A stretch of 63,986 nt of DNA, filler included, from Klebsormidium nitens (taxonomy: Eukaryota; Plantae; Klebsormidiophyceae), in assembly GCA_000708835.1 (NCBI GenBank). It is 8 parts of 8 records of this genome, joined end to end, with 100 filler letters (N's around TTAATTAATTAA, not from the genome) between each part and the next. Parts side by side here need not be neighbours in the genome. Positions count along the whole stretch, not along the records: positions 32,427 to 49,452 come from DF238011.1; 7 more parts are not named here. One strand, given 5' to 3'. The notes under the pieces are model-generated. The model was given only the letters and a program-made list of their open reading frames with translations, was not told the DNA's origin and searched no databases. The position numbers and the translations under genes were made by a program. This document shows, one piece after another, positions 9,113 to 49,452 of the stretch (the stretch's first letter is position 1; each line of letters starts with the position of its first letter).

Positions 9113-12100
9113 GCATGGACTTAGAGAGGGGGCGAAGAAGTACGAGAGAGGGTTATAGTGCTGAGGAGATGTCTCAAGTTCGTTGGGTGACCCAGTACTT
9201 CAAACGCTGTTGCTTCTTGAAACTGCTTTGGATGCAGTATCATTATTGCCAGGGTCCTTTGAAAGTTTTGAAGGCATCCGTGTGCAGGTGTAGCTTTGCG
9301 CAACCGATCAGGTCCTGCTTGGAAGACTGTTCTTTTCTTACTTTTTTTGTTTGCTGTTCAATGTTCCGGCCGCTCGTTATGCTTGACATTTTTGAAACCG
9401 TGGCCAATCCATCTTGCGACCTCTAAGTCGAGTGGGTAAAACAAAAGCAAACTACAAATGAGACTACGCCATCGATGACGCGATTGTACACAGCTGGCTG
9501 CCTTAGATGCGAATGGCATGACGCATCCTGCAAGGCTGCTTGTTCGCATGCAGCAGACGAGTTGAGCGCCGGCTGCGAGTCATGCATCGTCATCATTCTA
9601 CCCACAACCTCAAGCTGCATTGCGGCATGTCACTCGTCCATCATCGGATCCACTGAGTTTCTGCATTAAATACAGATCCTCAGATCAACTCCGAAGCGGA
9701 CTAGGGTACCAGCCGCATGCATTATCGACTTAGCTGATAGTCCTAGCTTGTATTATAGACGGTTGCCACCACCCTGATCCCTGCGGCGTGCACATATAAA
9801 TATCTGATATAGCGCGCTGTATTTGCACGTGCGAGGCAGTATTTCACGTGTTCATTCGGATTAAGGACAAGAACGAAATCAAGGAAAAAGACATCATTAC
9901 GTACCTAGTTGTACTCATGTCAACATGACATGCGAACGCATTGATGCTGAAAGCTTTTTCGGCAAATACCGGGCGAATCAATCAAGGGGTCAATTCCGGC
10001 AGGCCCCGGGCTGGGAACTCGAAATAACAGCATGATCCGGATGTCGCCGTTACCCCTAACCCAGACGGACCCTAGCTGCGCTTGTACATGATTCCGGTAC
10101 GTATAAGCATTTGAACTTGATCCAGAGGCGCCTCTGAACTCATTGTCCATGATACGTGTTGCGCATAATGACAAGATAAGCTGCCAAATTATGACGCAAC
10201 CACTAATACCCTTGACTTTACATGGTGCAAGGGACTGACTTTCGCAACGAACATACTTGCCTTCGAAGGTACAAGAGTTCGAATAGGTCTTTCTTTCAAA
10301 AAAGTTGACTGTCTGTGTGTGTCTAATTTCTTGGTTCAAGAGGTGCAACTGCCATAGCCGCTCAATACGACGCTGGCAGTTGTTGTTAAGGTATTCGCGT
10401 CAAGATCTGCCCCTTATTTTATCGTGTTTATACAAGACTCGATCTGATTTCAAACCCGTTGCTTGTGGTGCAAAACCAACCAGACATGCTAAGCATTGGT
10501 CGCACAGCTGCAGCACGGGCCCTCAGGGCCTTCACCCCAGCCGGTCCAACCGGGGTAGTCCTCGTTCCGCCCAGCGGCGCGCCGCTCGTCTCCCTCGATT
10601 ATCCATCGCGAATTCCGTTTGAGTCCGCTCGTCCATCGCGCGCTGCGGTTACACTCTTCCACATATACATATTCCCTCGGGGCCAGCTCGCATGTGACAA
10701 AGAGTCTATACACACATACCCTCTATATATAGGGAGGGTGTTGTTTTTTCCTAGCAACGATGCAGTAAGGATCGGCGCGGTGCTGCCGTCGCCAAAATGC
10801 ACCGCGCCGATTGCGGGGTGTTGTTCATGTTGTTCTCGTTTCGCCGACTCGCACAGTCATACGTCTATACGTGTCAGCAACAACACTGAGATGTTCCAAT
10901 CGACCATCCCGAAAAAAAGCCCGGTGACGGTCCGGACTCCGGGTGTTGTTGGATTGGATCAGTGGATCGTCGTGTGGGGCAACTTTGCGTGCTTAAGCTA
11001 CCCCCCGGCACAACTCTAAGCCTGCGCAGGGGTACATTGAGCCTTGGGACTATGCACACCTAGCTACCTGGAGGCGGGTCTCCGGGTTTCTCTTTTAAAA
11101 TGGAGCCCGGGTCTCGAAATTGACATCAGACACCCCCTTCGGGCTATGCACACTAGAACACTAGTCGGGGTCTCGCTGACGTGTCGGAGGGCCCGGGTAG
11201 ATTGTTAAGATTGAAATTTTCTAGAATCCGAGTCCCGGCTTTTTGAATTGCATGGCCGGGTTTCGATCGAAACTTAATCGGGGTCTCGGTAACGTCACGG
11301 GGGAACGATCGACGCGCCAAACGTACTTTTGCGGGCTTCGATCGATCCGTGTACAAAATGTACACGGTTCTAGGTACACAACGCATTGAGGAGCGGAAAC
11401 CCAACTCCCCGTTCAATTCTGTCAATTGCAAAACATTCCAATCACATGCTTTGCTCCTGATCCTTCTCGTGTGTGCGGACCGAGACAAACCGTTCTGCAC
11501 TCCTACACTCTCGTCCACCATCAGTGATTATCCTTTGAATGATCATAAAACCAAGCAAAGTGTTTGGCAAAGGAAGGTGAACAGGCTGAATGAAAGTTGA
11601 CATCCCTTTCATGCATGCCTTCCTCTCCTTTCACTCTCTGGATGCATGGCATAAATTCAACATGAGTTTGGCATGACACCTGGATGTGTGTTCAGTGCTA
11701 TCAATTTGTAATGATTGATGCAGCTAAACATTCACTGGGCCTGGCTAACCGTCCAATTCTATTGCCGTCTTTATGTTTGTCCGGATTGGATAAATGACAT
11801 CCGGGACCACTACTGTAGGACTAATCTAATCTGCTTATAGAAGGGGCTATGTTCTAGGGGCTCGGCTAGACCAAACTCAAGCATACGAATAAAAGCGGGA
11901 ATACTCTCTGAAAGCTATATCATGCAGCAGCCAAGCATTCTGAACATTACATTACCTGGGTGAAAGATATGCAATTTTGGATGAGTTTTCCAGCCTTTCG
12001 GAGAGCTGAACAACGTTAATCAAGATTGCCGTGCCTGAAGGGTGTTGTATCATACTTCAGGCTTGGGGGGAAGAGAAGCACTTGGTCAATCTTCTGCCGG

Positions 12101-12582
12101 CACAGGATCTTCAGTGACGAAGCCAATCAGTAGAATAAAATTGTCTTCTGTAGATGCGGGCCTCCCACTCGCCAAAAGAGTCCCGGTCAAATTGCTGCAG
12201 CTGTCAGATCAGGATGTGTCGCGACACAAAGTTTGGCCCAGCCCCTTTCGAATGCTATTATCTCGTGCTTCGTCCGAGCTCTTCACTGATTGCTAACTTG
12301 TCTTTGCTAAGAGGTCTGTGCTTTTTGTGGCGCGAGAAGAGCTTTTTGCTGTGCGAAGCAATTTGGAAATGAAAAGCAAGCTTCTTGCAGCGTCAGCTTT
12401 TGCGCTTCGGCTATGAGTCCATCGATCTCGGGACCGACGACACCTGTACGAGTCCACCGAGCGCGGACAAAGAATCTCAGCCCTCAGACTTGCGCTTGAC
12501 TCGCACCACACTGTGACGGTTGGCCAGCTTAAGCGAAGTGCTGGCAGGATAACGACGAAACACTAACGGCAGCCATGTGCAG

Positions 12583-12682
12583 NNNNNNNNNNNNNNNNNN
12601 NNNNNNNNNNNNNNNNNNNNNNNNNNTTAATTAATTAANNNNNNNNNNNNNNNNNNNNNNNNNNNNNNNNNNNNNNNNNNNN
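12583..12682. other. Artificial contig spacer
   Basis: N44-TTAATTAATTAA-N44, with stops in all six frames. Confidence 0.98.
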
Positions 12683-32426: not shown

Positions 32427-32632
32427 CAGCAAGATATCTGCTTGACTGCATCGAACGGCAGAGCCGAACGAAGATCCACCGGAATGGTAGCAACGGCAAA
32501 GAAAGCCGTTCCATCCGGGAAAGCATCACAGATAGACAAGACCAGGTCGAGTCATCTGGATAGAACGCCGTATATCAACGGTCTCACAGCGCGCCGTTAA
32601 GACGTAACCGCTGTCGTTTCGCTAACAAGCAG

Positions 32633-34596
32633 CTAACGAAATCCTGACGAGAACGAGGTTAGGCTTAACCAGACGTAATCGTCACATGGGAGCCATAATA
32701 GCTGTTTCACGGGTATTGAGTGCGGCGCGGAGAGATGCCCAGATGGCTGGCTGTAGCCACGGGGCAGACGCGGCATCCTTAGACTGTTCGATGGGCATCG
32801 TGCTGGGTTTGGCGGCAGCCGCAGAGGAGCCCCAAAAATCATTGACCGCAGCGCCCGTAACCAGGCGAGTAGAGTCGGCCGGGTGCCGCATGAGGGCAGG
32901 AAGGGCCGTCGAAGCATTCTTGTGGACGAAGTGCAAAGCTCGACGCTCGCGAGAGTTGGGCGGAGCTGCGTAGGCATTTTCACGACGGTGGACAAGCCAG
33001 GATTGCTTGGCAGTACGTAAGGCATCGGTAAGGCGCCGGCACCAGAGATGCTGGAGCTCTAGGGTGCGGTCCCAGGCGATCTGCCAGGAAGCGAGATCCC
33101 AATTCGAGCGGGGTTGAAGAGGTAGGAGAGCAGACAGATGCGTACGAAAAAGGGAACTTGTGTCAAAATCGTGATAAATGCGACGAACAGTGTTGCGAGG
33201 GCCTTTTGTCAGATTACGGTGGCCCCAAGTATGGGCATCATGGAAGTGGCGAAGGGCCAAACGATAGCGACGAAGCCAGACTACAATCGCCTGAGCTTGG
33301 CCTGCTTCACTGGTCTTGTAGATGCTGCGGCGCGGTTCAGGCGCGCCGGTCGAAGCCAGCAATGAGCGGGGGATGTCGACACATAATGTAAGAAGATGGC
33401 TGTAAATGTCGGACAGGAGGGTGTCAGAAATGGAAGCGGCAGCTTGTGGTCCGCTGGTGGGGGTTGACAGTAGTAGTGCAGAGACAGAAGGGAGCAAATT
33501 GATCTGCCATGAAGAAATCTCCGAGGAAATAGTTAACGGGTCAATCGTTTTAAGTTTGTCAATGTTAATGAGAGGGGGGGAGCGGAAAGGAACAGATGGA
33601 TACGCGATCCATCCATGACCAAGAGAGGCAAGGCTGATACTTGAGAGAGTAGCACGATGATCAGAAGCCCCGACAAAATTGTATTGATCCCAGTCAAGTA
33701 CGACTGTGGGTTCCATGTGCTGCGGAGCAAACGAGATGAAGATTTTATCCAGGATCGAGCGGTATGTGAAATTAGCATTGGCGTATGTGTAGTGGATAGG
33801 GGCAGTATACTGTGAGCTTGAAAGGGGGTTAAAAAGATGGATCGAGGTAGCTCGTAGGTCCTCGATGAAACGGCGAAGAAATGTGCCATGCTGGTTGTCC
33901 GGGGAGTTACTTGTAGAGGACACCGGCACAACAAGAGAGGGAGATCGGAAGATATCTCGCGAAGGATCCAGGTAGCTATTGCAGTCGCCCCCCAACAGGA
34001 TGTGCGGGTGGGATTCAGAACGAACAGATGGCGCCGCCGATTTCAGGTGTTGAGCAAGATCTGTCCAGAAAGATGCTTTTTGTTGCTGGTTGGCAGGAGC
34101 ATAGATTCCAAATATGTGAAGGATAAGGGTACTGTCAGTGGGGCCCCGCAGGGTGGGTGCACCTTGTAGGAGACGAGATTGCAATTTGTGGGGAACTGGA
34201 GCTGGTTGGAAAGCAAGCCCGTCTTTTACGGCTAGGCAGACTCCCCATTTGCGTAAGCGGGGGTCCAGGTAATTAGATGCGGCGGTTGAGTCTACATGAG
34301 AAGAACTTGTAAAAGGTATAACCCTCAAGATTAGTAGAGGGAGCGGACGGCGAAGACCGAGAATGGACCCGGCGTGTGATAAGGATAGCAATGTGAACGT
34401 TATGCAAACGAAGGAAAGTTGGGAGGCGGGCTAATTTGCCGTCAATGCCACGAAGATTCCAATTGAGAATGCGGAGATGGTCGGTAACAACGATAGAGGG
34501 GACATCAATGGGAGAGGCAGCTGGGCCCGTGTTAGGATGTATGTCGCCGCAGAGTAGGAGCAAGCACATTAATAAAACAAGACGTGCGAGCTGCAA
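32633..34596 (-). mobile_element. Non-LTR retrotransposon (LINE) ORF2 fragment: APE-type endonuclease and linker, frameshifted; RT not present in the contig
   Basis: LRILNWNLRG, GVCLAVK, IFGIYAP, ILLGGDCN, YTY...SILDKIF and SDHRA are EEP/APE motifs. There is a frame change near 34370-34390 and a stop at about 32682. Confidence 0.85.
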
Positions 34597-36841
34597 TCCA
34601 TGAAGAGGGAACCATGCATAGATGTGTCGATAATGATCCTCTCGGGGAGTTATGAAGTAAGTTCCGCAAGTGGCGGATGCGGTGATTTACTATTGTGTTG
34701 GAATTATGCACGATAGGATGGCAGAGTGCAGGCATCACATGATATAATGAGGTGGGATCACTGTTACCAGACAGGAAAAGAACAAAAGTACCATGGATGT
34801 ATTGCAGGTATGAGAGCTGGCGGTATGCACGACGCAGCCGATGGCAACATGCACGGAATCGACGGTGCCGGCGATAGCGGCCTTGAAACATAAGAGAGGT
34901 GGCAGTTGCCCATATATGTTCTAGCATGAGAGTGTGAAGATGGAAAGCAAACCACACAAAGGTGATCAAAGCAAATAGGCCAAAAGTGGATGCAGAAGGA
35001 TAGCAAGCATGGACAATATGAGGATAAAAAAAGCAGAAACCCGAATAAGGAGGTTGGGGATAGGGGAGGGGAGAAGAGAGGGCTCACAGTCAGGTAGATC
35101 AATAAAAGTGCTATAGGCCGAGTCCGATGCCCGCGAAAGACCAAGGAAACCTGGAGAGCCCTGCATGAATTGGGCAGCATTTCCCCACTCCTGAGAGGGT
35201 ATACCGAATGGGGACGAAAGCAAAAGAGAAGGGGAGGAGCAAGGCTCCACAGAAGAGATCTGCAATGAAACCCTAAATAGAGGTGAGGCATAAATGCTGG
35301 TGATCAAGCAAGGTCGGCCACCGGGATCCCAGATGATAGAGCCACCCGGATCCCAAGTAAGGGGGGAGGAGACGATAAGAGAAGCGAGGTCGTAACAGCC
35401 ACTGGACACCCCGCTGTAAGGGGAAAGAAGCGGTACGCTCGGAGAGGAGGCCATGACAGATGTTGGATAGCCCTGGGAAGACGGCAACCAAGCTCCCAAT
35501 ACTAGTCTGTGCTCAAGCAAGGTGCATCCAAGCAGAACCCTGAAAAATGCTAGAGAAGTAGAGATATCAAAAGAGGCCCTATGGCAACCCGTGGTGCAAG
35601 ACTCCGTGGGCAGACCGATGCAAGGCGACGTACAACCCCGACTGAGGGCATGTGTACGTCTAAGATGACCAAGATCACATTCTGCCCATGAGCGGAGGAA
35701 TGTACGGGTGCCAGCAGGGGATATCTCTACAACAGCATAAGATCCACTGGAAGAAGCCTGAAGCAAGAAGCAGACACTGGAAAGCAGGAAGCGTACCACA
35801 TGGGAGTGGGTGGGCTGCATACCTGGCCTTGGAGTGAGCACGTGATGGTGGTGTGCTGATGGTGGAGCGAGTTGGCAGCATCACCATGCACGAATCTCCT
35901 GTCGAAGCGCCCTGGAATCTGAGCGCCAGTTCGTCGACAGGCTACCGCGGGGAATGACAGAGGGGAGAGTGATGGATCTTGTGGCAGCTGTCACGCTGTA
36001 GAGGCTCGTTGCCGTGGCTCATCGGAGCTGCGCGCGCGCGCGAGTTGTGAGCCGTTGATATTAGGGCTCGACCCGATCAGACGGCTGTAGGTTGCTGCAG
36101 TTTGTAGTCTACTGTGTGTAGACTCGAATGCTGAGTGACTGCGGCCAGCCCTATAAGCTTGACCCCAAAGTTGCTGATGCAACTTTCTGTACGTTGCTCT
36201 GAGAAGGAGGAAGGCGCGCTATGGCTGCATAGTGAGACTTCCATAGGCAGCTTTTCTTCATGAGTGCCAAAGCAGAAGTTCCCTGAGCACATGTGTTTGT
36301 GCTCTTGTATGTGGTGCGTGTTGCGGTGTGCGACATGGCGGCGTGGCGGTGTGCCACTTGACATTCCATCATAAGCGGGGTGCTTATATTTACGTACAGA
36401 AAGTTTAGAGTCTTGTTTCCTGTAAGGCTCGTTCCAGTAGTGGAGGAGTTCATCGGGGGGGCAGCTTGTGTGTTCAAGCTGCTGCAGACGAGGAGGGTGA
36501 CCGAAAGAACTTGCCGAGTGCAGCTTGTTGTTAGGTTGAGGAAAGGCACAAATGCTGTGAATCAGCCTGGTAGTGTGGTCCGGCTTGTTGGGGGCAAAAC
36601 TGTGGAGCGGCAAGGCAGCCCTGTGTGGGCTTGCAAGCAAAGAGGCGAGTGCGCTTCGTCGTGGGTGCGCAAGACGGGGGCGTCAGCGCATCGTGGGGGT
36701 GTGTGGTTTTAGGGTTTCACCTCAAGTTATGTGTTTGAGCTGGAATTGGAGGTTTTGAGCTTAAAGCAGGCGTGCTTGAGCTGAGGGGAGACAGAGTGGA
36801 GTGCATTTGAGCTGGGGGGGGTGCTTTCTAGCCAAGATGGC

Positions 36842-37332
36842 TGTCGCGATCCTACCCGGGGATCTCTCACTAAACCCAGCTACGCCAGGCACCTAGACAC
36901 ATGTCAACGCAATACAAATGTCACACTCTAGAATGATTACTTCAATCACAGATCACCTTCGCCTAGTCACAACATACACATAAGCACAGTCTACTTATGT
37001 GGAGACTCTCTGCTGGCCGTCATGCAGCATAACTGGGGGACAATGGTTGCTGGTAAAAGCCGCCCTTATATGCCTTAGAACGAACAAAGAGAGAATGAGC
37101 TACAAGCAGCTCATTCTCCTACTTAGCTGTTCTGTACGGTAATCATGCTACGATCAATGCATTACCGGACTTAGCTAGTTACGGCTGACTCTAGCTTAAC
37201 GACCGGGTTGCGAGATAACCCGGTCGCGAGGCAATCTGGCGTGACAGCTGTCGCGATCCTACCCGGGGATCTCTCACTAAACCCAGCTACGCCAGGCACC
37301 TAGACACGTGTCAACGCAATACAAATGTCACA
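36842..37332 (-). repeat. 3' terminal repeat block: B1 (37249-37332), gc, A2 (36931-37246), 5-nt junction, B2 (36842-36925)
   Basis: B1 and B2 are 84 bp with 1 mismatch. A2 matches 48768-49083 over 316 bp with 5 substitutions. Confidence 0.92.
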
Positions 37333-37344
37333 CTCTCCCCTCCT
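37333..37344 (-). other. Polypurine tract
   Basis: Minus-strand AGGAGGGGAGAG lies directly before TGTGACA, 33 bp after the pol stop codon. Confidence 0.88.
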
Positions 37345-37376
37345 GAACCGTGCACCCCCAACGTCCTAAACACGGT

Positions 37377-38757
37377 TCACTCTGCTGACCCGACTGGGCC
37401 AACCAATGCCTGGGCTGCCTGACACCTGGGGCAAAACCAATCACCCTCAGGAACCGCCGCCAGCGGAGGAACCAGGCATCGCGTGTGCCACCCGGCCCCA
37501 CACCCGTCGCACAGCAGCATCGAGGCCTCGTCATCAGCCCGCCGGCACCGCGTGCACGCGAAGTCGACGGTGGGTCTCGCCAGGCGCGCATCCTGCCGGT
37601 CGTCGATGTCAGCTCTGTGACAGGGAGCGCACCGCTCCATGTGCACCCGGACCGTCCGCGCATCCGCCCCCTCCAGCTCCAAAACACCCCCGACCCTCAC
37701 ATGCTTAACCCGCAGAATCCGCGGGCCCGCCCGACTGTCCAGGGTGTTCAGCATCTCCCGCTGCAAGTACACGTAATCACCGACCGCGTACCTGAGGACT
37801 TGGGGTTTCCAAGCCCCACTGCGGGTTTTGGCATACCGTAACGTGTCGCGATGCTGCGCGATTTGCAGGTTTTCCATGGCCATGGGAACCCACCTGCGGA
37901 ATAGTGCCGCTCGCTCCGCTACCAGCGCGACCAACCGGTCCGGCCGGTCCAAGTCCAACGGCTCCTCGATGGCCACCCGAACCGTCCCCGGAATCACCAG
38001 CTCCCGTCCGTACAACAGCATGTACGGGGAAAACCCGCTCAGGGACGCCTGCGTGCTAAACCGGTACCCCATTGCAACCCACGGCAGGTACACATCCCAT
38101 TGCTCAGCTGCGTGCCCAAGGCACCACTTTCGCAACGCCCCCTTGACGACCCCCACTATCCGCTCACTGAGACCGTTCGCCTGCGGGTGATAGGACGAAG
38201 TCGACCGATGGTCGATGAAGGACTTGTCGAGCAGCTCCTGAAAAGCACCCCCGAACTCGCCCCCCCTATCTGTCACCACCTCCGCGCAAGCCCCGAACGT
38301 CGTGAGCACCTCCCGGGTGAATGCCTCCGCCACCGTCTGCGCCTCCTTGTCTGCCGTGGGCACGAAAACCACGTGCTTGCTGAAGTGCTCGACCATGACG
38401 AGCACGAACTGATTCCCACGGCTAGACTTGGGCAACGGCCCTGCAAAATCAAGTCCCCACCGGTAAAACAACCCCTTGATCGGGAGGGGCTGCAACACCG
38501 GGTGCACGGAGTTGAAGGCTGCCCTCACCCGATCACACGCCTCGCACTGGCGCACCACCCTCTGCACATCCGCTGCCAGCCCCACCCACCAGTACTGAGG
38601 ACTCAGCAGAGACACCGTCTTTTTCACCCCGAAGTGCCCGCAGCGCTCGTGCACGTCCCGGATCAGGGCTTCCCTCGCTTCTGGCCGCGGAACTACCCGC
38701 ACCTCACCGTCTGCCCCCCAATGCACCAGATGATCCCGCCGCCACTCGAAGCTGCGC
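37377..38757 (-). CDS. Integrase (HHCC zinc finger and DDE core) with C-terminal PHD finger
   Basis: HERCGHFG...CEAC; WGLDFAGP, TDRGGEF, HPQANGLSER; PHD C4HC3 CTRC...LLCDGC...WHTRC...WFCPRC at 37422-37556. Confidence 0.93.
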
Positions 38758-39279
38758 NNNNNNNNNNNNNNNNNNNNNNNNNNNNNNNNNNNNNNNNNNN
38801 NNNNNNNNNNNNNNNNNNNNNNNNNNNNNNNNNNNNNNNNNNNNNNNNNNNNNNNNNNNNNNNNNNNNNNNNNNNNNNNNNNNNNNNNNNNNNNNNNNNN
38901 NNNNNNNNNNNNNNNNNNNNNNNNNNNNNNNNNNNNNNNNNNNNNNNNNNNNNNNNNNNNNNNNNNNNNNNNNNNNNNNNNNNNNNNNNNNNNNNNNNNN
39001 NNNNNNNNNNNNNNNNNNNNNNNNNNNNNNNNNNNNNNNNNNNNNNNNNNNNNNNNNNNNNNNNNNNNNNNNNNNNNNNNNNNNNNNNNNNNNNNNNNNN
39101 NNNNNNNNNNNNNNNNNNNNNNNNNNNNNNNNNNNNNNNNNNNNNNNNNNNNNNNNNNNNNNNNNNNNNNNNNNNNNNNNNNNNNNNNNNNNNNNNNNNN
39201 NNNNNNNNNNNNNNNNNNNNNNNNNNNNNNNNNNNNNNNNNNNNNNNNNNNNNNNNNNNNNNNNNNNNNNNNNNNNNNN
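38758..39279. other. Assembly gap inside pol
   Basis: Run of N with no spacer motif. Confidence 0.97.
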
Positions 39280-41242
39280 CTGCAGCAGTGCCAAAACTGC
39301 CGAATCCTCCCACACATCCACTGCGGGCCGCGCCACCGCCCGCTGACGCCCGTTCTCCCCGGGCGAGTCTGTTAGGGCCCACGCCAACGCAGCAGCTGCT
39401 GACCAGCAAGGCGCCAGCACCTCCCCCAAGTCCCCCTCCTGCCGGACCCCTGCTGTGTCCTCGTCGGACTCCTGGGGGTACCGGCTAAGGCAGTCCATCT
39501 CGTTTTCTTCCCCGGGGGTGTAGTCGACTTCCATGTCGAACTCGCTCAGCATCATGGCCCAGCGAGCGAGCTTACCCGTCAGCTTCGTGTTGGTCAGGAT
39601 CCATTTGAGTGGTCTGTGGTCGCTCTCCAGCCTGAACTGCTCCCCGTACAGATAGTTCCTCCACAGCCGCACGAAGTAGACCGCCGCCAGCAACTCCCCC
39701 TCGAAACTGCTATACCGGGACTCAGCCGGGTTGCAGCTCCGGCTCTCGTAGGCAATCACCCGGTCCTCCCCCGCCTCGTCAGCTTGCAGCAGGACCCCGC
39801 CTACCCCCTTCTTGCTCCAGTCGCAGCGCACTTTGAACTTGCGCCCACGCACTGGCAGTGCCAGCACCGGCTCGTTTTGCAGCGCCTTTTTGAGCGCCAG
39901 GAACGCCCCCTCCTGCTCCTCACCCCAGCGCCACTGCACCGCTTTCTTCGTCAACTCGTTGAGTGGCCCCTGCAGCCTGCTGCACTCCGGGATGAACCTC
40001 CGATAATAATTCACCACCCCGTTGAACGCCTTGACAGACGTGACGTCGGTCGGTCGCGGCAGGGCCTCAATCGCCGCCACTTTGGCCACCACCGGCGACA
40101 CCTTGCCTGGACGCGGCCACATCCCGAGGTACTCCACCGAATCTGCCCCGAAGCAGCACTTGTCGGGGTGACATTTGAGCCCCATCTCTCTCAGCCGGTT
40201 CAGGACCCGCTGCACCAGCGCCATGTGCTCCTCCAGCGTGTCCCCTCCAGCCACCAGCACGTCGTTGATGAAGCTCCGCGCGAACTCCTCCAGACCCCTC
40301 AACGTCCTGTCGATCGCCCGCTGGAACCAAGCGCTGGCGTTGCGCGCCCCGAACGGACACCGCTTCCAGCAGTACAGCTTGGTGGACCCCCAGAACGCCA
40401 GCTTGCGCCTGTCCTCCTTCTTCACCACCAGCTGATGAAACGCTCCTCTGATGTCGATCGTCGAGTAGAACTTTGCGTGCCCCAGCGCGTCCAGCACCTC
40501 CTCCGGCAGCGGCATCGGGTAGCGATCCTGCGCCGTCTCCAGGTTAACCCTGCGCAGGTCCGTGCAGAACCGGTCCAGCTTCCAGTTCCCCTCCGGATCC
40601 TTCTTTGCTGCGAGCACCGAGTTGGCAGCAAAATCGCTGTCCGTCTCCTCGATGATCCCCGCCGCCTCCAACTCCGCGCACCGCTGATCGATCAACTCCC
40701 ACTCCTTCACGCTGTGTTTTCTTCGCCGCTCGAAAATGGGCCTCTCTGTCTTCAGCGTCAACTCCACTTCGAACAGCTTAAACTCCCCAATTTCCTCTAA
40801 GCTGTTCGCGAACACGTCCCGGTTCGCCTCAGCCACCGCCGCCGCATACCCCTGCTCCTCAGGCGTCAGCTGACTCCCTACCGACCACCCCCGACACTTC
40901 CCGGCCACCGGCCCTCCCGGTTTTTCTGCTTTCACCGACTGCTCCTGCCCCACCGGTCTTCCAACCCCATCTTGCCCCGGTCGGATCTGCTCCCCCGACC
41001 CACCGACCTCCTTTCCGTCCGCAGCCGCCCGCAGCCCCCTCCCCGTATTCATTCTGAGCTGCTCCCCAGGCTGACCGCCCATCCCCTGTTCTTCCTTGGC
41101 CACACGCCCAGGCGCGCGCGCTCCTGACGCACCCACTCCTGCGGCGCCACCTGGCGCATGCGCACGCGTTCTTGGCGCGCCCACACCTGCGGCGCCACCT
41201 GGCGCCAGCGCGCGCCCTCCTGGCGCACCACCAGCCGCCGCG
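39280..41242 (-). CDS. Reverse transcriptase and RNase H (gypsy-type); the RT YxDD box reads FIND
   Basis: FCTDLRRVN, YPMP, FYSTIDIRGAFHQL, CPFGARNASAWFQR, SFINDVL, EYLG; RNase H CDWSKKGVGGVLLQ, GELLAA, SDHRPLKW. Confidence 0.93.
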
Positions 41243-42134
41243 NNNNNNNNNNNNNNNNNNNNNNNNNNNNNNNNNNNNNNNNNNNNNNNNNNNNNNNNNN
41301 NNNNNNNNNNNNNNNNNNNNNNNNNNNNNNNNNNNNNNNNNNNNNNNNNNNNNNNNNNNNNNNNNNNNNNNNNNNNNNNNNNNNNNNNNNNNNNNNNNNN
41401 NNNNNNNNNNNNNNNNNNNNNNNNNNNNNNNNNNNNNNNNNNNNNNNNNNNNNNNNNNNNNNNNNNNNNNNNNNNNNNNNNNNNNNNNNNNNNNNNNNNN
41501 NNNNNNNNNNNNNNNNNNNNNNNNNNNNNNNNNNNNNNNNNNNNNNNNNNNNNNNNNNNNNNNNNNNNNNNNNNNNNNNNNNNNNNNNNNNNNNNNNNNN
41601 NNNNNNNNNNNNNNNNNNNNNNNNNNNNNNNNNNNNNNNNNNNNNNNNNNNNNNNNNNNNNNNNNNNNNNNNNNNNNNNNNNNNNNNNNNNNNNNNNNNN
41701 NNNNNNNNNNNNNNNNNNNNNNNNNNNNNNNNNNNNNNNNNNNNNNNNNNNNNNNNNNNNNNNNNNNNNNNNNNNNNNNNNNNNNNNNNNNNNNNNNNNN
41801 NNNNNNNNNNNNNNNNNNNNNNNNNNNNNNNNNNNNNNNNNNNNNNNNNNNNNNNNNNNNNNNNNNNNNNNNNNNNNNNNNNNNNNNNNNNNNNNNNNNN
41901 NNNNNNNNNNNNNNNNNNNNNNNNNNNNNNNNNNNNNNNNNNNNNNNNNNNNNNNNNNNNNNNNNNNNNNNNNNNNNNNNNNNNNNNNNNNNNNNNNNNN
42001 NNNNNNNNNNNNNNNNNNNNNNNNNNNNNNNNNNNNNNNNNNNNNNNNNNNNNNNNNNNNNNNNNNNNNNNNNNNNNNNNNNNNNNNNNNNNNNNNNNNN
42101 NNNNNNNNNNNNNNNNNNNNNNNNNNNNNNNNNN
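41243..42134. other. Assembly gap within a GC-rich repetitive linker between DNMT and RT
   Basis: Run of N flanked on both sides by CCTGGCGC-containing repeats. Confidence 0.95.
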
Positions 42135-43567
42135 GCCAGCGCGCGCGCTCCTGGCGCGCTCCAGACTGCAGCGACATCTGGCGCGGGCGTGAGTTCTCCT
42201 GGCGCGCCACCAGCACCTGGCGCCTGCGCTCGCCTCACTGTCCCGGCCGTGCCCACGTTTGGCCCTGCACCCTGGCCGTTGCCGTTCGACACTTCCGACC
42301 CCCCTCCTAACGGCACAACAGTAGCTACTAACGGCTCTTCGGCCGCCTCTGCGCAAGCCGCAAACAGCCACATCACCGTGTTGAGATCCATGGCTTGGCC
42401 CAAGAGCTCCCGTCGAGTGGATTCTGACAGGCCGGGGGCTGCAGAGAAGCCCCGGGGAAACCCCATGGCTAGTTCCCGCTCGTCTGCTGTGGGCTCACCA
42501 TACGTGACTGATCGGCCGTTCTCCACCTGGAGGACTCCACCGCGCGTGTGCGAAAAGGCGTGGGACCCGTTGTAACTCACAAATGTCGGCAGCGCACGCC
42601 TTGGCTCCCCGGGTACCTCGACTTTGGCCCACGGAGCCTGTCCCGAGCCCCGAGGGACCATCGCACTGCGCCCCGGGCCTAGAATCTGATGGACAAACAG
42701 TCCGGGGGGGCGAACCTGTGCAGAGACCGCAGCGCGCAAGACCGCCACGTCAGCGAGATTGGTCCACCACGCGCGCAGACGATGCGCGTGGGAACCCAGC
42801 TGTGCCGCGTCCACGACCACTTCCGGCCCCAGAAGGCTGCGTACCTCAGCGAAATGGTCCCGTACCCGAGGCCGGCGGTCGAGCCCAGCCGCAACATGCT
42901 CAATTACGTACGCCAACGGGTGCCCCCACTCCCTGTGGGACGCCTGCAGGTGGTGCAACACCCGCACCAACTCACCGACCAATCCCGACCGAGGATCATC
43001 TAACCCACGCCCAAGCCCCGCGGCACTGCTGCCTTGGCACGGCCACCCCGCCACCACTACGTCCAGCGGGCCGAGGGAAAGCAGGTGATCTGCGCCGACC
43101 AGCTGGATGTCCTGGGGCAATCGGTGGTGCAACTGCACTCCCGCCCGTTCACCGATCCTTCCGGGAAACTCCGCGCTCAACTGCGCAACCGCCCACCTGT
43201 GCAGCTCCCGGGCTGCGCCCCGCTTCTCACACGCAATTACTTCCCCGACCGTATACCCTAGCCGGACCAGCGTTTGGGTTGCCGTCCCCACCCCGGCAAA
43301 CAGCTCAAGAACCCGCAGCGGCCTGTCCCTTGGCAACGGTCCAACTACCGACCAGTCCAACGGCAGCAAACCCCTGAGTTGACTCAACGGGACTTGTCGA
43401 GGCAACTCACTTTTCGGCCGTTCCCCCGCCAACGCACTTCGCACTGCGCGCACTGCCTCCGCCTGCACACTCAGTGACGGCCCCCGTGGCCACCTTCCCG
43501 TCTCTTCCGACCGCCTCCTCCGGCCGGCCCCCTTGGGCACCAGGCGTGAGTCCTCCTCCATACCCAC
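42135..43567 (-). CDS. C5 cytosine DNA methyltransferase domain (about 42380-43320) inside the retroelement
   Basis: Motif I LRVLELFAGVG, motif IV VAGWPCQG (catalytic Cys), motif VI VIEHV, motif VIII HRLRAWW, motif IX ERELAMGFP, motif X LLGQAM. Confidence 0.9.
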
Positions 43568-43582
43568 GCCCGGTGCCTGGCG

Positions 43583-46500
43583 TCACTGCGTGGCACTGCA
43601 GGCGAGCGCGACGCCTGCTGTGCCGGTGGGTGCTCCATTCTCCGAACCGCGCACCGCCCGCTGACCCACTGGCTGGCGCAACCGCATGGGTATGCTCGCT
43701 ACATGCTCTCCCCGCGAGCGCCAATCTACGCGGTACGTACCCCTTTCCGACCACCGATCAATGCTCAGCCCGATTGGGTAAGCTGCCCGGGTCTCAATAA
43801 GCAGGTCATAGCCCGTCGACTCGGTGACAGCTAAGTGCTCATACAGAGTGAGCTCTGCCGGGGTGCCGGCATTCAGCACAATCGGCACCGGATCTCGCGT
43901 GAACCCCTTGCCCAACGGCTCTACCTTTCCCAGCGCCGTTTGCACCTTGCACAGCACCCCGTTGCTTTCCACCGGCAAGCCGAGCTGAGGGGCCAACCGC
44001 GCCCCCGCCATGGAGTAGAAACTGCCCCCGTCAATCAGCACCCGCAGCGGCGCTTTAAGCCCCGCAACCGTCATCACCTTGACGGCACCATCTCGATTTT
44101 CCACCCAGTCCGGGGTGCCGACCCAACGGCTGCGCTCAGTGGGTGGGACTTTGGGCAGCGCTTCCGCAAAAGCCGCTAATGCGTGTGACGCTTCCCACGC
44201 CTCTGCCGTCCCCCCCCGTTCTGCTTCGCCGGACCCCTCGACACCGTTGACCCCCAACTTCCCCTTGCCCTTATCCTTGCGGGAGACCATCTCCCACCTT
44301 CGTGGATTTGTCACCGTTTTAACCGGCCCCGCTTGCGCCCTTAGCGCCGTCGCGGAGTCGACCCCCACAGACCGCGCCTCCTCAACGAGCATTTCCAATG
44401 CTAATTGCTTGTCCGCCTCCTCCGTCTTTGACCGAATCTGTGCCTGCCGCAGGCAGTCCGCCCTAGCCTGGGCCATCCACGAGCTTTCCGGGTCTGTGTT
44501 AACCCCGGGGTTAATCGTGCTGGTAACCCGCACCTGGTTGTGCTCACCGCGCGGTTCTTCTGCTCCCGGACCCACCTCGGCTGCTTCCCCGGGCATTACT
44601 GACTCACCCGACCCCACTACCTCACGGCTGGCCCTCGCGCTGAGCGCGCGTGCTGGCACGGGTGCTGACACCGTTGCCCCAAGACGGACGTCTGCGATGG
44701 GCGTCGAGCCGCCAGCGCCACCTGGCGCCATCTTCTGCGCTGCACCGACCGCGCCACCTGGTGCCACTCTGCTTGTGCCACCTGGCGCCGCTCCTGGCGC
44801 CCTTCCTGGCGCCACGCTGCGTGCGCCACCTGGCGCCGCTCCTGGCGCCGCACCGACCGCGCCACCTGGCGCCGCTACTGGCGCAGCGCCGCCGGCGCCG
44901 CCTGCTTCTCCGCCTGTGGGTCTCCGAGCCTCACTCTCCGGCCCCCCCGCTGTGGCAACCGCTCTGCGCATGACTTCTCTTGGGTCGAGCTGCGGCTGTG
45001 GTGCACCGACCCCTCCCGTCATGGCCACTACCTGCTGCAGTGACAGCCCCGCGCGGTCAGCCAATTGCAGAAACGCCTCGACGTCAACCGTGACCTGCCC
45101 CAGCAGGATTGCCGCTCCCCCCGTTCTCACCTCCTCTGCCGGATGTTCAATCACCACAACCGGGGGCGCTGCCCCGGCCACCTTTCTCGTCGACGTGGCC
45201 ACTCCCTGGATCACACCCTGCTTCTCCGCCTGTGCTGAGGCCCCCGGAGTCCCCTCCGTCCTAATGCTGAACCCCTGCGGGAGCCGATGCAGGCCCTGCG
45301 CCGCCACCTCCCGTCCCTGGTCCGGAAGCTTCGCCATCCGCTCCTTCAATGCTGCTTTGTCTGTGCGGGCTCGCAGCTGTCTCAGAGCCTCAACCGGGGC
45401 CTTGCGCTCAAGCGCAGCGGTCCCCACAGGCTGCCCCGTCGCCGGACCGACCACCTGCCGCGGGCGCGTGCCTGCCCGCCCCTGCTTTCTGGGCTTCAAC
45501 CGAGGCCTGATCGCCCGCGCCTCTTTGCTTGGGGCATCCGCTCCTGCCGATGCGCGCGTCGCCACAGCCCCAAGCTCGCACAACGAAGTGGGGCGCCAAC
45601 TGACATCTCCCCCCGTCGGCAACGCAGCTGCGCCCAACTCGTACTCATCCCCGTCCCAGCTGGCAGTGTCGTCATCCTCCAAACTCAGCGCTGCCGCCGC
45701 CTGCGCCGCTGCTTTCCACGCCCGGAATTCCTCCACCTCCGACATGCTCAGCCCTGCTGCGGCCAGCTCTGCACCACCACCACCTCCCGCGGGGACCGCT
45801 GCCGCTGCCGGTGCCACGTGCCTCTGCGGGCACTGGAAAGACAGGTGCGCTGGGTCCCCGCAGACGAAGCAGATCCGCGGTCCCCGCGCCCCCCGACCTG
45901 GACCGGACCTGCCGGTGCCTCTCCCCGGGCCACCCCGACCTGACCCTCCGCCCCTCTGCGGGCACGTGTTTCGGTAGTGCCCCATCTCCCCGCAAGTGTG
46001 GCACGCGCCTGACCCCGCTGACCCAGCCGTCATCACAATCGCAGCTGCTGCTGGCTGCACCTCAGGGACGGCCGCGTGCGCGACCGGCGCACGCCCGCCC
46101 CACCTCGGTCTGACCTCTGCCGGCCTAGGAGTCATCTCCCTGGCGATCCGCAACCTGGAGGCCATCTCACTCACCCGCACAGCTGCGTCGTAAGCGTTGT
46201 CGAGCGTGTATCCCCCGTCCCCGCTCGAGGCTGCCGCCAGCGCGTGCGTGTTGACGGCATCCCCCAACCTCTTGTCCAGCGCAGCCACAAACTTGGTGAC
46301 GAGCTCAGGATCTGTCAACGGCTTCTTGAGGTCCCCCGCCAGCCCCTGCAGCCGGAACAGCAGCTCCGGTAACTCCTCGCCTGCCTCCCGCCTGAAGTTG
46401 ACCCATTCCTGCGCTTTACCCTCGTTCCTCTCACCGAAGTGGCGTTTGAGATTCGCCAAAAGCTGCTTCACCGGCTCCTCCTTCGTGTTGCACTCCTTGT

Positions 46501-46921
46501 ACGCGCGCAAATGCGCCTCCTTGGCGGGGTTGTCCATGTGCTCCCCCAAGTGCACGCAAAAACGCTTCTTGAACTCGGCTCCTTCGACCGGCCTACCCAA
46601 GTCTTTCTGTAGCTTGGTGAACCGGTCAAGGATGCTCCCCTCAACTTGGAGCTCAAACTGCTCCAGAGTGAGCCCCTCGTTCTTCCTCCCCGAAAACCGT
46701 TGCTTCCCCTCACTGACCGCTGCCATGTCTGCCCAATCTTCTTCTTCCCACCAGAACGCAGACAGACTTGCCCTCTCCGGCCTGTTCACAACTACCCCAC
46801 TGCTCGCACTAGCGGTGTCCTCACTGCCCTCCGCTGCTGCAACTTGGCTGTACTCAGTCGCCGCAGACACCTCGAAAATGGAGCCGTATATCGTCTGCCG
46901 AGCTCGTGTTTCTACGGGCAT
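43583..46921 (-). CDS. Gag (two CCHC zinc knuckles), Ala/Gly/Pro-rich spacer and retropepsin protease
   Basis: CHTCGEMGHYRNTC and CFVCGDPAHLSFQC; retrotransposon gag-like FRREAGEELPELLFRLQGLA; protease VLIDGGS...YDLLIE. 1112-aa ORF. Confidence 0.9.
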   Translation of the reverse strand: MPVETRARQTIYGSIFEVSAATEYSQVAAAEGSEDTASASSGVVVNRPERASLSAFWWEEEDWADMAAVSEGKQRFSGRKNEGLTLEQFELQVEGSILDRFTKLQKDLGRPVEGAEFKKRFCVHLGEHMDNPAKEAHLRAYKECNTKEEPVKQLLANLKRHFGERNEGKAQEWVNFRREAGEELPELLFRLQGLAGDLKKPLTDPELVTKFVAALDKRLGDAVNTHALAAASSGDGGYTLDNAYDAAVRVSEMASRLRIAREMTPRPAEVRPRWGGRAPVAHAAVPEVQPAAAAIVMTAGSAGSGACHTCGEMGHYRNTCPQRGGGSGRGGPGRGTGRSGPGRGARGPRICFVCGDPAHLSFQCPQRHVAPAAAAVPAGGGGGAELAAAGLSMSEVEEFRAWKAAAQAAAALSLEDDDTASWDGDEYELGAAALPTGGDVSWRPTSLCELGAVATRASAGADAPSKEARAIRPRLKPRKQGRAGTRPRQVVGPATGQPVGTAALERKAPVEALRQLRARTDKAALKERMAKLPDQGREVAAQGLHRLPQGFSIRTEGTPGASAQAEKQGVIQGVATSTRKVAGAAPPVVVIEHPAEEVRTGGAAILLGQVTVDVEAFLQLADRAGLSLQQVVAMTGGVGAPQPQLDPREVMRRAVATAGGPESEARRPTGGEAGGAGGAAPVAAPGGAVGAAPGAAPGGARSVAPGRAPGAAPGGTSRVAPGGAVGAAQKMAPGGAGGSTPIADVRLGATVSAPVPARALSARASREVVGSGESVMPGEAAEVGPGAEEPRGEHNQVRVTSTINPGVNTDPESSWMAQARADCLRQAQIRSKTEEADKQLALEMLVEEARSVGVDSATALRAQAGPVKTVTNPRRWEMVSRKDKGKGKLGVNGVEGSGEAERGGTAEAWEASHALAAFAEALPKVPPTERSRWVGTPDWVENRDGAVKVMTVAGLKAPLRVLIDGGSFYSMAGARLAPQLGLPVESNGVLCKVQTALGKVEPLGKGFTRDPVPIVLNAGTPAELTLYEHLAVTESTGYDLLIETRAAYPIGLSIDRWSERGTYRVDWRSRGEHVASIPMRLRQPVGQRAVRGSENGAPTGTAGVALACSATQ

Positions 46922-46930
46922 CTGCAGCCC

Positions 46931-47980
46931 CTAATCAAGCTCACTGATCCCCCCTGCTGCCGACCCTGCGTCCACACTCTCGCCCGTCTGTGCCCCCGCA
47001 CGCGCTCGCCTCTCCTGTTTCTTGCGCCTGCGCTTCTCCCGTTTGGCGGCCGCACGTTGCTCCTCGCTCGCCTCCACGCCCCTCGCCCGCTGCCTGATGG
47101 CCTCCTCCGCCGCAACCTCTACGATCCTAACCACCTCCTGCAGCCGGGCGTTTCGCGCCTCCTGCTCCCTCTTCGCCTTGGCGTACCACACGCTAGCTTC
47201 CACCAACGCATGCGCCTCCCTCCAGGCGATCACCCTTGCCCCCAATGTCTGAAAGCGCTCGCAAACGGAACAGTCAACTGGGCACCCCAGCTTAACGGCA
47301 GGTAGGTGCTGCGCAGGATCAGGCACTTGCCCAATGCAGGCCGCCCCAGACGCGTTGTTAGCCACAAAGGCAGCGTACACCTTGCCTCGGGGAAACTCCT
47401 TGTGCCGCAGCTCAAACGCGCGCCACTCCTTGATAAACTCCTGCGCACGACGAATCGCCCTGGCCACCGCGGGATCAGCCGCCGCCCTGCGCTCAAGGTC
47501 CTCCTTCACCCGCTCGACTTCCCGCGCCTCGCGCCTGCTACCCTCAGGCGTGCTGACTTCCCTTGCAAACTCTGCGTCCTCCTGTCCCAGCCGAAGCCCC
47601 TCACTCACAGCTTCCCCTAACTCCCCCACTGCCTGCTGCTGGCGCGCCCACCTGCTGGTGCTGCTCTCCTCCGCCCCTGCCGCCTCTGCCGCCTTTTCGT
47701 CACAAATGACACAGCGAGTCACGCAGGCGCTGAGCTGCACCGGCCAGTGATCCTCCCTGCGCGCTTGGATTCCCAGCAGCGCCGCCCCTGACTGATTATT
47801 GGCAACGTACGTCACCCAGCTGCCACTCTCCTCCGAGACCCCCGCCACTAGCTCAGCTAGAAGCAACTGCCACCCCTGTATAAACTCATGCGCCTTCCAG
47901 AACTCGCGCTCACGCTCCTTCCCTCCAAGCTCACACAGCCGCCTCAGGAGCTCCTGGATGTCAGGTGCTCCTGGCGCCAT
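46931..47980 (-). CDS. Accessory ORF0 upstream of gag with an internally duplicated Cys/His module
   Basis: Open for about 350 codons from ATG 47980. Two copies: KAHEFIQGW..YVANNQSGAALLG..HW..CVTRCVIC and RAQEFIKEW..FVANNASGAACIG..HL..CPVDCSVC. Confidence 0.75.
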   Translation of the reverse strand: MAPGAPDIQELLRRLCELGGKEREREFWKAHEFIQGWQLLLAELVAGVSEESGSWVTYVANNQSGAALLGIQARREDHWPVQLSACVTRCVICDEKAAEAAGAEESSTSRWARQQQAVGELGEAVSEGLRLGQEDAEFAREVSTPEGSRREAREVERVKEDLERRAAADPAVARAIRRAQEFIKEWRAFELRHKEFPRGKVYAAFVANNASGAACIGQVPDPAQHLPAVKLGCPVDCSVCERFQTLGARVIAWREAHALVEASVWYAKAKREQEARNARLQEVVRIVEVAAEEAIRQRARGVEASEEQRAAAKREKRRRKKQERRARAGAQTGESVDAGSAAGGISELD

Positions 47981-48754
47981 GCTCCATACGCAACAGCTGG
48001 TGGGCCACTGAAAACTTGGCGGACAGACGCCTGCATGGCGAAGAAGACATGGCTGAGACACGCATCCCACCTCGCCCCCAACTGCCACCACCAGCGACCC
48101 CTGACCTGCTCAGCCCAGCTGCCACCAAACCTGAAACCAACCGCCCGCCTGACCCGCCTGCGCACGCCCAACAGCTGACAGCCCTGAGCATGCAGCTTGC
48201 AGCTGCCACGCCTGCGCAGGCTCAGCAGCTGCCAGCTCTGCGCCTCCGCGCCAGGCTGACCTGCCCACACGCACGCCCACTCTACGCCCCCCACAGCCCA
48301 CAGCTGCAAGCAGGCGGGGTCTCACAGACCCCCACTAACACTGGCCCTGGACCTTATCCCCCAGAACAGGCACCCTCTGTGAGCTGCAGTCTAGCTCACA
48401 CTTTGGCCAGGTCAGCTCGACCTGCCAGCCCTACCACTCCAGGCCCCCCAAGCCTTAACACCTGCTGCCCTTGAACTCACTGAAACTCTCAGCACTTCGC
48501 AGCCGCCCTCCGTCAGGGACTTTGTCACAGCTGGAGACCTTATTCTACCCTGGGTCAGTCTCCACACTCAGCGCCTCTCCAAGCTGGGACCTTGGGACAA
48601 CGCACTCAGCTCATGCTTTCTCCACAAGCACACAACTTCCACTCAGAGTCACTCTGACTCACCACTGCACTAAGGCAGCATCGCCAGCTGTCCACCGTGT
48701 TCCACCCGGGTGCCCCGCCACCTGGATCGCTGGCGGGTCCTCGCTGTTCCGCTG

Positions 48755-48764
48755 ATTCTCTCTT
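48755..48764 (-). other. Non-tRNA primer-binding site, complementary to an LTR segment (candidate self-priming)
   Basis: No TGG after the LTR end. 48755-48767 (ATTCTCTCTTTGT) is the exact reverse complement of 48921-48933 (ACAAAGAGAGAAT). Confidence 0.65.
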
Positions 48765-49083
48765 TGTGAATGATTACTTCAATCACAGATCACCTTCGCC
48801 TAGTCACAACATACACATAAGCACAGTCTACTTATGTGGAGACTCTCTGCTGGCCGTCATGCAGCATAACTGGGGGACAATGGTTGCTGGTCAAAGCCGC
48901 CCTTATATGCCTTAGAACGAACAAAGAGAGAATGAGCTACAAGCAGCTCATTCTCCTACTTAGCTGTTCTGTACGGTAATCATGCTACGATCAATGCATT
49001 ACCGGACTCAGCTAGTTACGGCTAACTCTAGCTTAACGACCGGGTTGCGAGATAATCCGGTCGCGAGGCAATTTGGCGTGACA
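48765..49083 (-). repeat. 5' terminal repeat (segment A only, 319 bp, TGTCAC...TTCACA on the minus strand)
   Basis: Matches 36931-37246; segment B is absent at this end and is replaced by host sequence carrying the TSD. Confidence 0.92.
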
Positions 49084-49452
49084 TGGCGAGCAAATACGTT
49101 GATTTTGAGGTTGCGGAGGCGCGCGGGGGAGAAAGTGACAATGGGTGTTCGAGGACTGTGGAGAAGGAGCTGCTTGCAGGCGAGTCCTTGCAAGAGTTGT
49201 TGAGCATTTCGGAGCGGGAGGCGCTCCATGTGTGTCGACGAAGGAAGCGGGTCAAGTGGGATCCAGGGGATCGAGGGGAGGATCAGAATGGTGCTTGAGG
49301 TTGAGAGTAGGCTGTGCCGAGACGGCACTGCCGAGTAAGGGGGGGGTAGCCAGCTAGTTTTGTTGTTGTTGGATTAGCATGATGCAACGTGTAGATGATG
49401 CGGAAGAGATGCTGGTGCCGAGGCGCTGCCGCAGCGATAGAGTACCGCATGA

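Follow-up and report, generated by a model that had tools for sequence, protein, structure and literature searches.

The stretch of DNA analysed here, referred to as the window, is 63,986 nucleotides (nt) long, filler included, and joins eight parts of the genome of Klebsormidium nitens (assembly GCA_000708835.1). The part at positions 32427-49452 (record DF238011.1) carries on its minus strand a retrotransposon with a gag-pol coding region and with long terminal repeats (LTRs) that are split into two segments, A and B, in a circularly permuted order. This window element is a member of the KnitGypsy-Dnmt3 group, Ty3/gypsy retrotransposons of Klebsormidium. Sequence comparison with its relatives indicates that the split repeats are the normal integrated form of the group and not an accident. 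The layout of the window element was checked by a direct-repeat search and a base-by-base comparison, and the following parts were assigned, U3, R and U5 denoting the unique 3', repeated and unique 5' regions of the LTR defined by reverse transcription:

36838-36841, unstranded: target-site duplication on the 3' side of the element, TGGC on the plus strand (GCCA on the element strand), identical to 49084-49087
36842-36929, minus strand: B2, second copy of the 88-nt 5' part of U3; its final base is the 3' terminus of the element (...GCGACA), the CA adjoining the flank
36930, minus strand: extra base at the A2/B2 joint, T on the element strand
36931-37246, minus strand: A2, the 316-nt 3' part of the LTR (rest of U3, R and U5), starting TGTCAC
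37084-37096, minus strand: LTR-internal 13-nt site (A2 copy) complementary to the primer-binding site (PBS), a candidate self-primer just 3' of a small hairpin
37243-37252, unstranded: att-like palindrome GACA/GC/TGTC at the B1/A2 boundary, spacer at 37247-37248
37249-37336, minus strand: B1, the 88-nt 5' part of U3, beginning directly after the polypurine tract (PPT)
37337-37345, minus strand: PPT core CAGGAGGGG (element strand), directly 5' of B1
48755-48767, minus strand: PBS ACAAAGAGAGAAT (element strand), complementary to 48921-48933 and 37084-37096
48768-49083, minus strand: A1, the sole LTR part at the 5' end of the element; its first base, 49083, is the 5' terminus (TGTCAC...), with no B upstream
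49084-49087, unstranded: target-site duplication on the 5' side of the element, TGGC

Read along the minus strand, the element consists of A1, PBS, genes, PPT, B1, GC, A2, joint and B2 in this order, with a duplication of 4 base pairs (bp) outside it. This layout, together with the TGGC duplication, had been proposed in an earlier note on this DNA and was confirmed at base level. The two copies of each segment are nearly identical, with a single difference between B1 and B2 (87/88 identical) and five between A1 and A2 (311/316). Complete, identical direct LTRs are not found at the two ends; the 5' end consists of A only and the 3' end of B-NN-A-B, where NN is the 2-nt spacer. TG...CA termini are present, but at the LTR-internal site, and the chromosomal ends are the two halves of this CA/NN/TG site with the 4-bp duplication outside, again in agreement with the earlier note. 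The PBS lies next to U5 and the PPT next to U3, the PBS being of the self-complementary type. The 10-bp palindrome GACAGCTGTC occurs once in the window (37243-37252), with 0.02 occurrences expected by chance. The repeat parts contain no gaps; the two runs of N (38758-39279 and 41243-42134) both lie inside pol. At the first gap (522 N), gapless relatives align collinearly and put the missing sequence at about 290-410 bases; the second gap is bordered on both sides by tandem repeats, so that its true size is not derivable; the repeats flanking it are 48 nt long.

The flank on one side of the element measures 365 bp. The other flank (32427-36837) is strongly G-rich and mostly A-rich on the plus strand, with a GC skew of +0.1 to +0.35, and contains long minus-strand open reading frames (ORFs) of up to 569 amino acids, which may be composition artefacts or an unrecognised repeat; these ORFs gave no match in Pfam.

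Relatives were collected as contigs encoding related integrases and their ends were compared; the sample is small and was found through integrase ORFs. The layout PPT, B1, ACA/NN/TGTCA, A2, joint, B2, flank was observed in 13 independent insertions from at least two deep lineages, the window element included. Besides the latter, the permuted layout was found in:

L001, L003 and L004: other scaffolds of K. nitens GCA_000708835.1
L002, L007, L008, L028, L029 and L030/31: N-free contigs from the Joint Genome Institute (JGI) samples 3300060284 and 3300060285
L020, L021-23 and L024/25: moss-associated metagenomes, with an integrase identity of 42-46%

The LTR sequences of the second set are unrelated or distantly related to that of the window element. 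The count of 13 leaves out the copies truncated at the 3' side (L018/19, L027 and L005/06, the last ending inside A2), as well as six soda-lake loci (L010-L014, L017) and the heavily nested Calypogeia locus L009, which were not classifiable. The earlier note had offered a single rescue event and a family-wide route as alternatives; the spread over 13 insertions and at least two deep lineages supports the family-wide route and leaves no room for the single event. In about 400 kilobases (kb) of fetched loci, neither an A...B form without redundancy nor a solo A-joint-B unit was seen, and a scan of viral_contigs found no relative. A composite of an A...B element lying beside a solo A-joint-B unit was also considered; it was ruled out, as the duplication flanks the whole composite.

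The internal site was compared directly between copies. Taken over two lineages, all 14 sites have TGTCA after the spacer; ACA stands before the spacer in 12 of them, and the two exceptions belong to old, decayed copies. The spacer itself is GC in nine sites, AC in three and GT or AT in the remaining two, AC being a family variant (L007 around 12618-12621, L028 11684-11685, L030 6093-6094). Because AC replaces GC in these three copies while the adjoining CA and TG are kept, the centre of the palindrome is not essential. The distance of the site from the start of U3 varies by lineage, between about 90 and 170 nt. The rest of the LTR cannot be aligned between the two lineages, so that conservation of the internal site far exceeds that of the sequence around it. 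A column-conservation profile of nine LTRs as defined by reverse transcription was moderately informative (mean share of the commonest base 0.70), and the direct table of internal sites is the better evidence.

The termini of the insertions agree with this site. All seven readable 5' ends pass from flank to TGTCA without B upstream, and 3' ends terminate in CA in 12 cases out of 13. Where both ends are available, in four complete copies, a 4-bp target duplication was present each time, three being perfect and one matching at 3 of 4 positions, which is far above chance: TGGC/TGGC in the window element, AAAA/AAAA in L007, AACC/AACC in L023 and ATAA/CTAA in L002. Combined, 4-bp duplications and TG...CA termini are the signature of a DDE (aspartate-aspartate-glutamate) integrase and not of a tyrosine recombinase. 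A 7-nt spacer at first assigned to the moss-metagenome copies was discarded upon re-alignment, which gave a 2-nt spacer with decayed adjoining bases and the perfect AACC duplication.

The tract CAGGAGGGG stands directly before B1 in most Klebsormidium-type copies with a readable B1 start, with CAGGAGGG in L028 and a longer run of G in the moss-metagenome lineage; in every relative, B starts right after the G-run of the PPT. Its first bases are AGAG in the window element and L001; other Klebsormidium families begin with ATGG, ATAG or AGGG, the moss lineage begins with ATAC, and B2 starts with the same bases as B1. AGAG, taken in the earlier note for the last four bases of the PPT, is thus the start of U3, since B follows the G-run in every relative, and the likeness of B-GC-A to a classical TG...CA LTR, which the note had pointed out, is coincidental, as relatives start the unit with ATGG, ATAG, AGGG or ATAC. 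Similarly, the ACA thought to be lost from A lies in the 13-nt stretch complementary to the LTR-internal site, that is, in the PBS.

The PBS is matched by an exact complement of 12-17 nt at an LTR-internal site about 150 nt into A in five Klebsormidium-type copies. Between the window family and the others this pair differs at several positions and the changes compensate on both sides. The hairpin next to the LTR-internal site is conserved. In RNA folds begun at the LTR-internal site, the first 13-14 nt pair with the PBS. Tf1/sushi-type Ty3/gypsy elements are self-priming, with a PBS complementary to an element-internal segment of RNA and not to a transfer RNA (tRNA). Because of its complementarity to the LTR-internal site and the compensating changes between families, the PBS of the window element looks self-primed as in Tf1 rather than tRNA-primed. 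A TATA-like motif was noticed downstream of the PBS-complementary site and makes the true transcription start uncertain.

At the A2/B2 joint, U5 meets with its last base the base that follows the PPT, either directly or with one extra nt in between. The abutment is exact in six or seven copies; beyond these, the joint of L020 was inferred to be exact by comparison with the related L018, and that of L024/25 was left out. An extra base is found in the window element (T), L007 (A), L008 (C) and possibly L030 (A). The imperfect circle junction described in the earlier note is in fact a near-exact U5/U3 abutment plus one T. Related copies differ in this base, T in the window element as against none in L001, its closest relative, and A in L007 and C in L008 as against none in L029. 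Because of this variation among related copies, the sequences fit a joint that is made anew at each insertion.

The coding capacity of the window element is that of a gypsy retrotransposon:

37380-48091, minus strand: gag-pol coding region in a single part, about 11 kb, with 2 assembly gaps and 2 in-frame stops
37422-37556, minus strand: PHD finger at the integrase C-terminus (PF00628, E = 6e-11)
38184-38462, minus strand: integrase catalytic core rve (PF00665), with the D,D35E residues D103, D163 and E198 of a 459-residue piece
38523-38684, minus strand: integrase H2C2 zinc-binding domain (PF17921, E = 4.5e-16)
39538-39927, minus strand: RNase H domain of the type found with reverse transcriptase (PF17917 and PF17919)
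40120-40590, minus strand: reverse transcriptase (RT) domain (PF00078, E = 1e-21)
42899-43315, minus strand: C5 cytosine DNA methyltransferase (DNMT) domain, N-terminal part of the profile (PF00145, E = 1.1e-8)
43919-44071, minus strand: possible aspartic protease, a weak match under the curated cut-off (PF13650, E = 0.13)
45821-46006, minus strand: two gag zinc knuckles of the CCHC type (PF00098, E = 4e-6)

The top protein matches were from K. nitens, with up to 91% identity. In the Pfam analysis, pol has the order RT, RNase H, Integrase_H2C2, rve on the minus strand, which is the Ty3/gypsy order, and the RT-RNase H part is of gypsy type; a published RT tree places KnitGypsy-Dnmt3 within Gypsy (PMC5890265, Suppl. 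Fig. 14a). The H2C2 domain, the rve core and the intact D,D35E uphold the classification of the element as a gypsy element with a DDE integrase made in the earlier note; in a protein alignment D103, D163 and E198 were invariant across seven sequences, the window copy among them. In the sequenced parts, frames across the gaps not being readable, gag-pol keeps to one frame, interrupted by two in-frame stops, and no frameshift was detected; an in-frame stop may represent the gag/pol boundary or a defect. The DNMT domain is placed within pol, between the gag-protease part and RT, and is also found in L002, L005, L007, L027-L029 and L031. The methyltransferase of KnitGypsy-Dnmt3 has been described as Dnmt3-type, and a DNMT inside pol is the published hallmark of these elements (PMC5890265). 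In the approximately 1,100 residues upstream of the DNMT, the zinc knuckles are the sole confident Pfam domain. No match to Phage_integrase was obtained even at E<=5 with all ORF pieces of the window copy and of the gapless L005, and sequence searches of the PDB with two unassigned ORFs returned nothing recombinase-like, just nucleocapsid-like knuckles.

Some further features of the coding region were recorded. The PHD finger at the end of the integrase occupies the place of the chromodomain in chromoviruses, and integrases of the H2C2-rve-PHD type were numerous in green algae, one liverwort and many metagenomes in the protein search. The gag ORF contains in-frame tandem repeats of 12-48 nt, and tandem-repeat stretches lie at 44700-44904, 41112-41229 and 42139-42208 of the window; relatives carry 60-102-nt arrays in the corresponding position between DNMT and RT (L005 8509-8862, L007 8461-8855). 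Rfam gave no match in the analysed piece.

Other structures were seen at the loci of relatives. Positions 826-1135 of L029 (minus strand) hold the A1 and PBS of a second, oppositely oriented element near the expected 5' end of the main one, whose own A1 was not found in L029. The soda-lake locus L013 carries, at 286-12650 (as does L012), two head-to-tail related copies with a period of 8,847 bp and no detectable LTR-type internal repeat in L013; a tandem dimer, a loop in the assembly and a circular form are all possible readings. In L009, from Calypogeia fissa, several insertions of a unit of about 470-615 bp, which has an AAGTC microsatellite at its start, surround the gypsy relative:

207-821, 3062-3527, 4979-5467, 11768-12255 and 12785-13272 of L009: insertions of the small unit

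A duplicated segment of L009 supplies the empty site for at least two of them (for example 3062-3527 compared with 19335). The small unit is a mobile element with no relation to the Calypogeia gypsy copy, whose 3' region it interrupts.

What the sequences show directly is the layout of the insertions with their termini and target duplications, a DDE integrase without any recognisable tyrosine recombinase, and a deeply conserved internal site. Our preferred reading, to which we give a probability of about 0.6, is that the att site of the DDE integrase lies within U3, and that integration needs the joining of U5 to U3 followed by opening at the att site of the 5' LTR. Reverse transcription would define an LTR that starts right after the PPT, runs B-2 nt-A and ends at the PBS, and the linear reverse transcript would consist of LTR, body and LTR with B-NN-A at each end. 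The tips of this linear DNA are without a conserved CA, the conserved CA/TG pair being located within U3. Joining of the U5 and U3 tips would yield a 2-LTR circle or an end-joined equivalent; the integrase would then nick 3' of CA on both strands at the internal site of the 5' LTR, the 2-nt spacer would be lost as 5' overhangs and the ends would be inserted with a 4-bp stagger. The predicted product is A1, PBS, body, PPT, B1, NN, A2, joint, B2 between 4-bp duplications. Because the PBS follows A1 and the PPT precedes B1, standard LTR replication would never copy B2 and the joint from RNA, and both would be re-created in each cycle. Retroviral integrases are able to cleave CA-containing palindromes at the LTR-LTR junctions of 2-LTR circles (PMC1905944, PMC1180852, PMC4372172). 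In the elements described here the junction would survive in the chromosome because the cut site is not the junction itself. The joined intermediate, the agent that joins the ends and the reason for the exclusive use of the 5'-LTR site are inferred. For the clade of gypsy elements with PHD-finger integrases, comprising Klebsormidium and the moss-metagenome organism, we consider it slightly better than an even chance that the att site has moved from the LTR tips into U3 and that integration obligatorily proceeds via the end-joined form.

Several points weigh against integration through a joined form. The intermediate is deduced from its chromosomal product alone, and self-priming and the position of the U3/R boundary are likewise deduced from sequence. 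The differing single bases at the joint could be later mutations. Both ends are present in four copies only. Furthermore, in a symmetric 2-LTR circle the internal site is present twice in identical form, and one would expect as many insertions with the mirror permutation (A, joint, B, NN, A, PBS ... PPT, B) as with the observed one; the mirror form was found in 0 of the 13 insertions, and under a 50:50 expectation a 13:0 bias has a chance of about 1 in 8000. As all 13 insertions have the same permutation, some asymmetric step is therefore missing from the model. Possible sources of asymmetry are the 5' LTR becoming double-stranded first, the position of the site 88 nt from the U3 tip as against 316 nt from the U5 tip, an end-to-end switch of the plus strand, or a cut made by the integrase on the linear molecule with the free tips sealed afterwards.

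The last two of these also lead to explanations that dispense with joining before integration. On the linear transcript, the integrase may cut the 5' LTR at its internal site, hold both halves (the short B fragment and the main body) and insert them, after which host repair would seal the free U5 and U3 ends. Alternatively, the plus strand may switch templates end to end while reverse transcription is under way and so create the joint. Taken together we regard these two variants as possible but doubtful. They give the same architecture, termini and duplications and a near-exact joint with 0-1 extra nt, such that sequence cannot tell them from the circle model, and they would allow the asymmetry (88 nt versus 316 nt, the 5' LTR being double-stranded before the 3' LTR) and fit the 13:0 ratio. 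Nevertheless, we know of no retroelement DDE integrase documented to carry two unlinked pieces of DNA into one target. Replication in the manner of DIRS elements was judged improbable. A transcript running from A1 into B2 would use the internal B1-NN-A2 as a template restoring the termini, and the joint would be inherited; this repeat layout has indeed been defined in PAT, Ngaro and further elements of the DIRS order (PMC4157794, PMC7192593), B1-NN-A2 formally equals the joined element termini and the permutation is fixed in DIRS-order elements too. However, in every copy the PPT abuts B1 and the PBS abuts A1, and priming at these places would never copy the joint or B2; moreover, the joint corresponds exactly to the end of U5 and the start of U3, with single-base differences between related copies.

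A tyrosine or other unrecognised recombinase, encoded by the unassigned parts of the ORFs or supplied in trans, would account for the layout as in DIRS/Ngaro, and split direct repeats elsewhere are, to our knowledge, confined to elements with a tyrosine recombinase. The approximately 1,100 residues upstream of the DNMT, devoid of a confident domain beyond the zinc knuckles, could harbour such an activity. Against this stand the negative Phage_integrase (window copy and gapless L005, E<=5) and PDB sequence searches and the intact, conserved DDE integrase, and neither 4-bp duplications nor TG...CA termini are made by tyrosine recombinases; we consider this explanation very improbable and already largely refuted. 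The rescue of a dead-end 2-LTR circle, once and at this locus only, is compatible with the window copy taken alone and is refuted by the 12 further independent insertions that have the same layout and internal site in other flanks, families and lineages; its probability is negligible. No more credit is due to an assembly artefact in which short-read scaffolding of a repeated element rotated an LTR. Two N gaps do lie inside the window element and another one inside A2 of L001, but the repeat parts of the window element are free of gaps and target duplications match across both ends. The same junctions to unique flanks recur in different families and, on contigs without N, in two other assemblies, which disposes of the misassembly that the earlier note had named as a possible refutation.

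The repeat arrangement of these elements is already in print. In the legend of Fig. 4c of de Mendoza et al. (2018, Nat Commun 9:1341; PMC5890265), KnitGypsy-Dnmt3 is described as having the repeats of DIRS and the domains of Gypsy, and the window element shares with it the host group, the domain set, the Dnmt3-type methyltransferase inside a gypsy pol and the DIRS-like repeats. The text and supplement of that paper do not give the termini, the target duplications, the att site, the placement of PBS and PPT or a mechanism; the present contribution lies in the anatomy of the ends and in the proposed mechanism, the family as such being known already. Literature searches on the family name, on split direct repeats with an integrase and on circularly permuted LTR elements returned nothing beyond PMC5890265. 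One practical consequence is that LTR-finding software would mis-annotate such elements, reporting A1 and A2 as LTRs of 316 nt that end at the wrong places and lack a duplication.

In the textbook view, LTR elements and retroviruses use the tips of the linear reverse transcript for integration, and joined 2-LTR forms are treated as by-products. The chromosomal copies described here are hardly explicable without prior U5-U3 joining, yet they carry the DDE hallmarks of CA termini and 4-bp duplications. With them, a natural system is at hand that allows the fate of end-joined DNA of retroelements to be read from genome sequence. Tf1/sushi self-primers have a self-complementary PBS like the window family but, unlike it, ordinary LTRs and termini. 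The closest enzymatic parallel is the retroviral 2-LTR circle, at which a DDE integrase likewise cuts 3' of CA on both strands of a palindrome (PMC1905944, PMC1180852, PMC4372172). In retroviruses this palindrome is the U5/U3 junction, and its cleavage is a side route that restores the normal linear genome; in the window family, in contrast, the site is inside U3, the joint is retained in the chromosome, the product is permuted and the route is apparently the sole one. The closest parallel in layout is provided by DIRS-order elements (PAT, Kangaroo, TOC, Ngaro, VIPER), which share the order A1, body, B1, A2, B2 and a fixed permutation (PMC4157794, PMC7192593) and are presumed to pass through a circular or end-joined intermediate, as proposed here. 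These elements use a tyrosine recombinase, have no DDE integrase and make no target duplications, whereas the window element has a DDE integrase, 4-bp duplications, TG...CA termini, a gypsy-type RT-RNase H, a PPT and a PBS. Split direct repeats are thus not diagnostic of tyrosine-recombinase elements, and the layout bears on a possible origin of DIRS-type architectures from gypsy-like ancestors. If the proposed mechanism is true, the clade of gypsy elements with PHD-finger integrases would be a natural DDE-integrase counterpart of DIRS/Ngaro and the first group of retroelements in which the joined form, supposedly a dead end, is the productive substrate.

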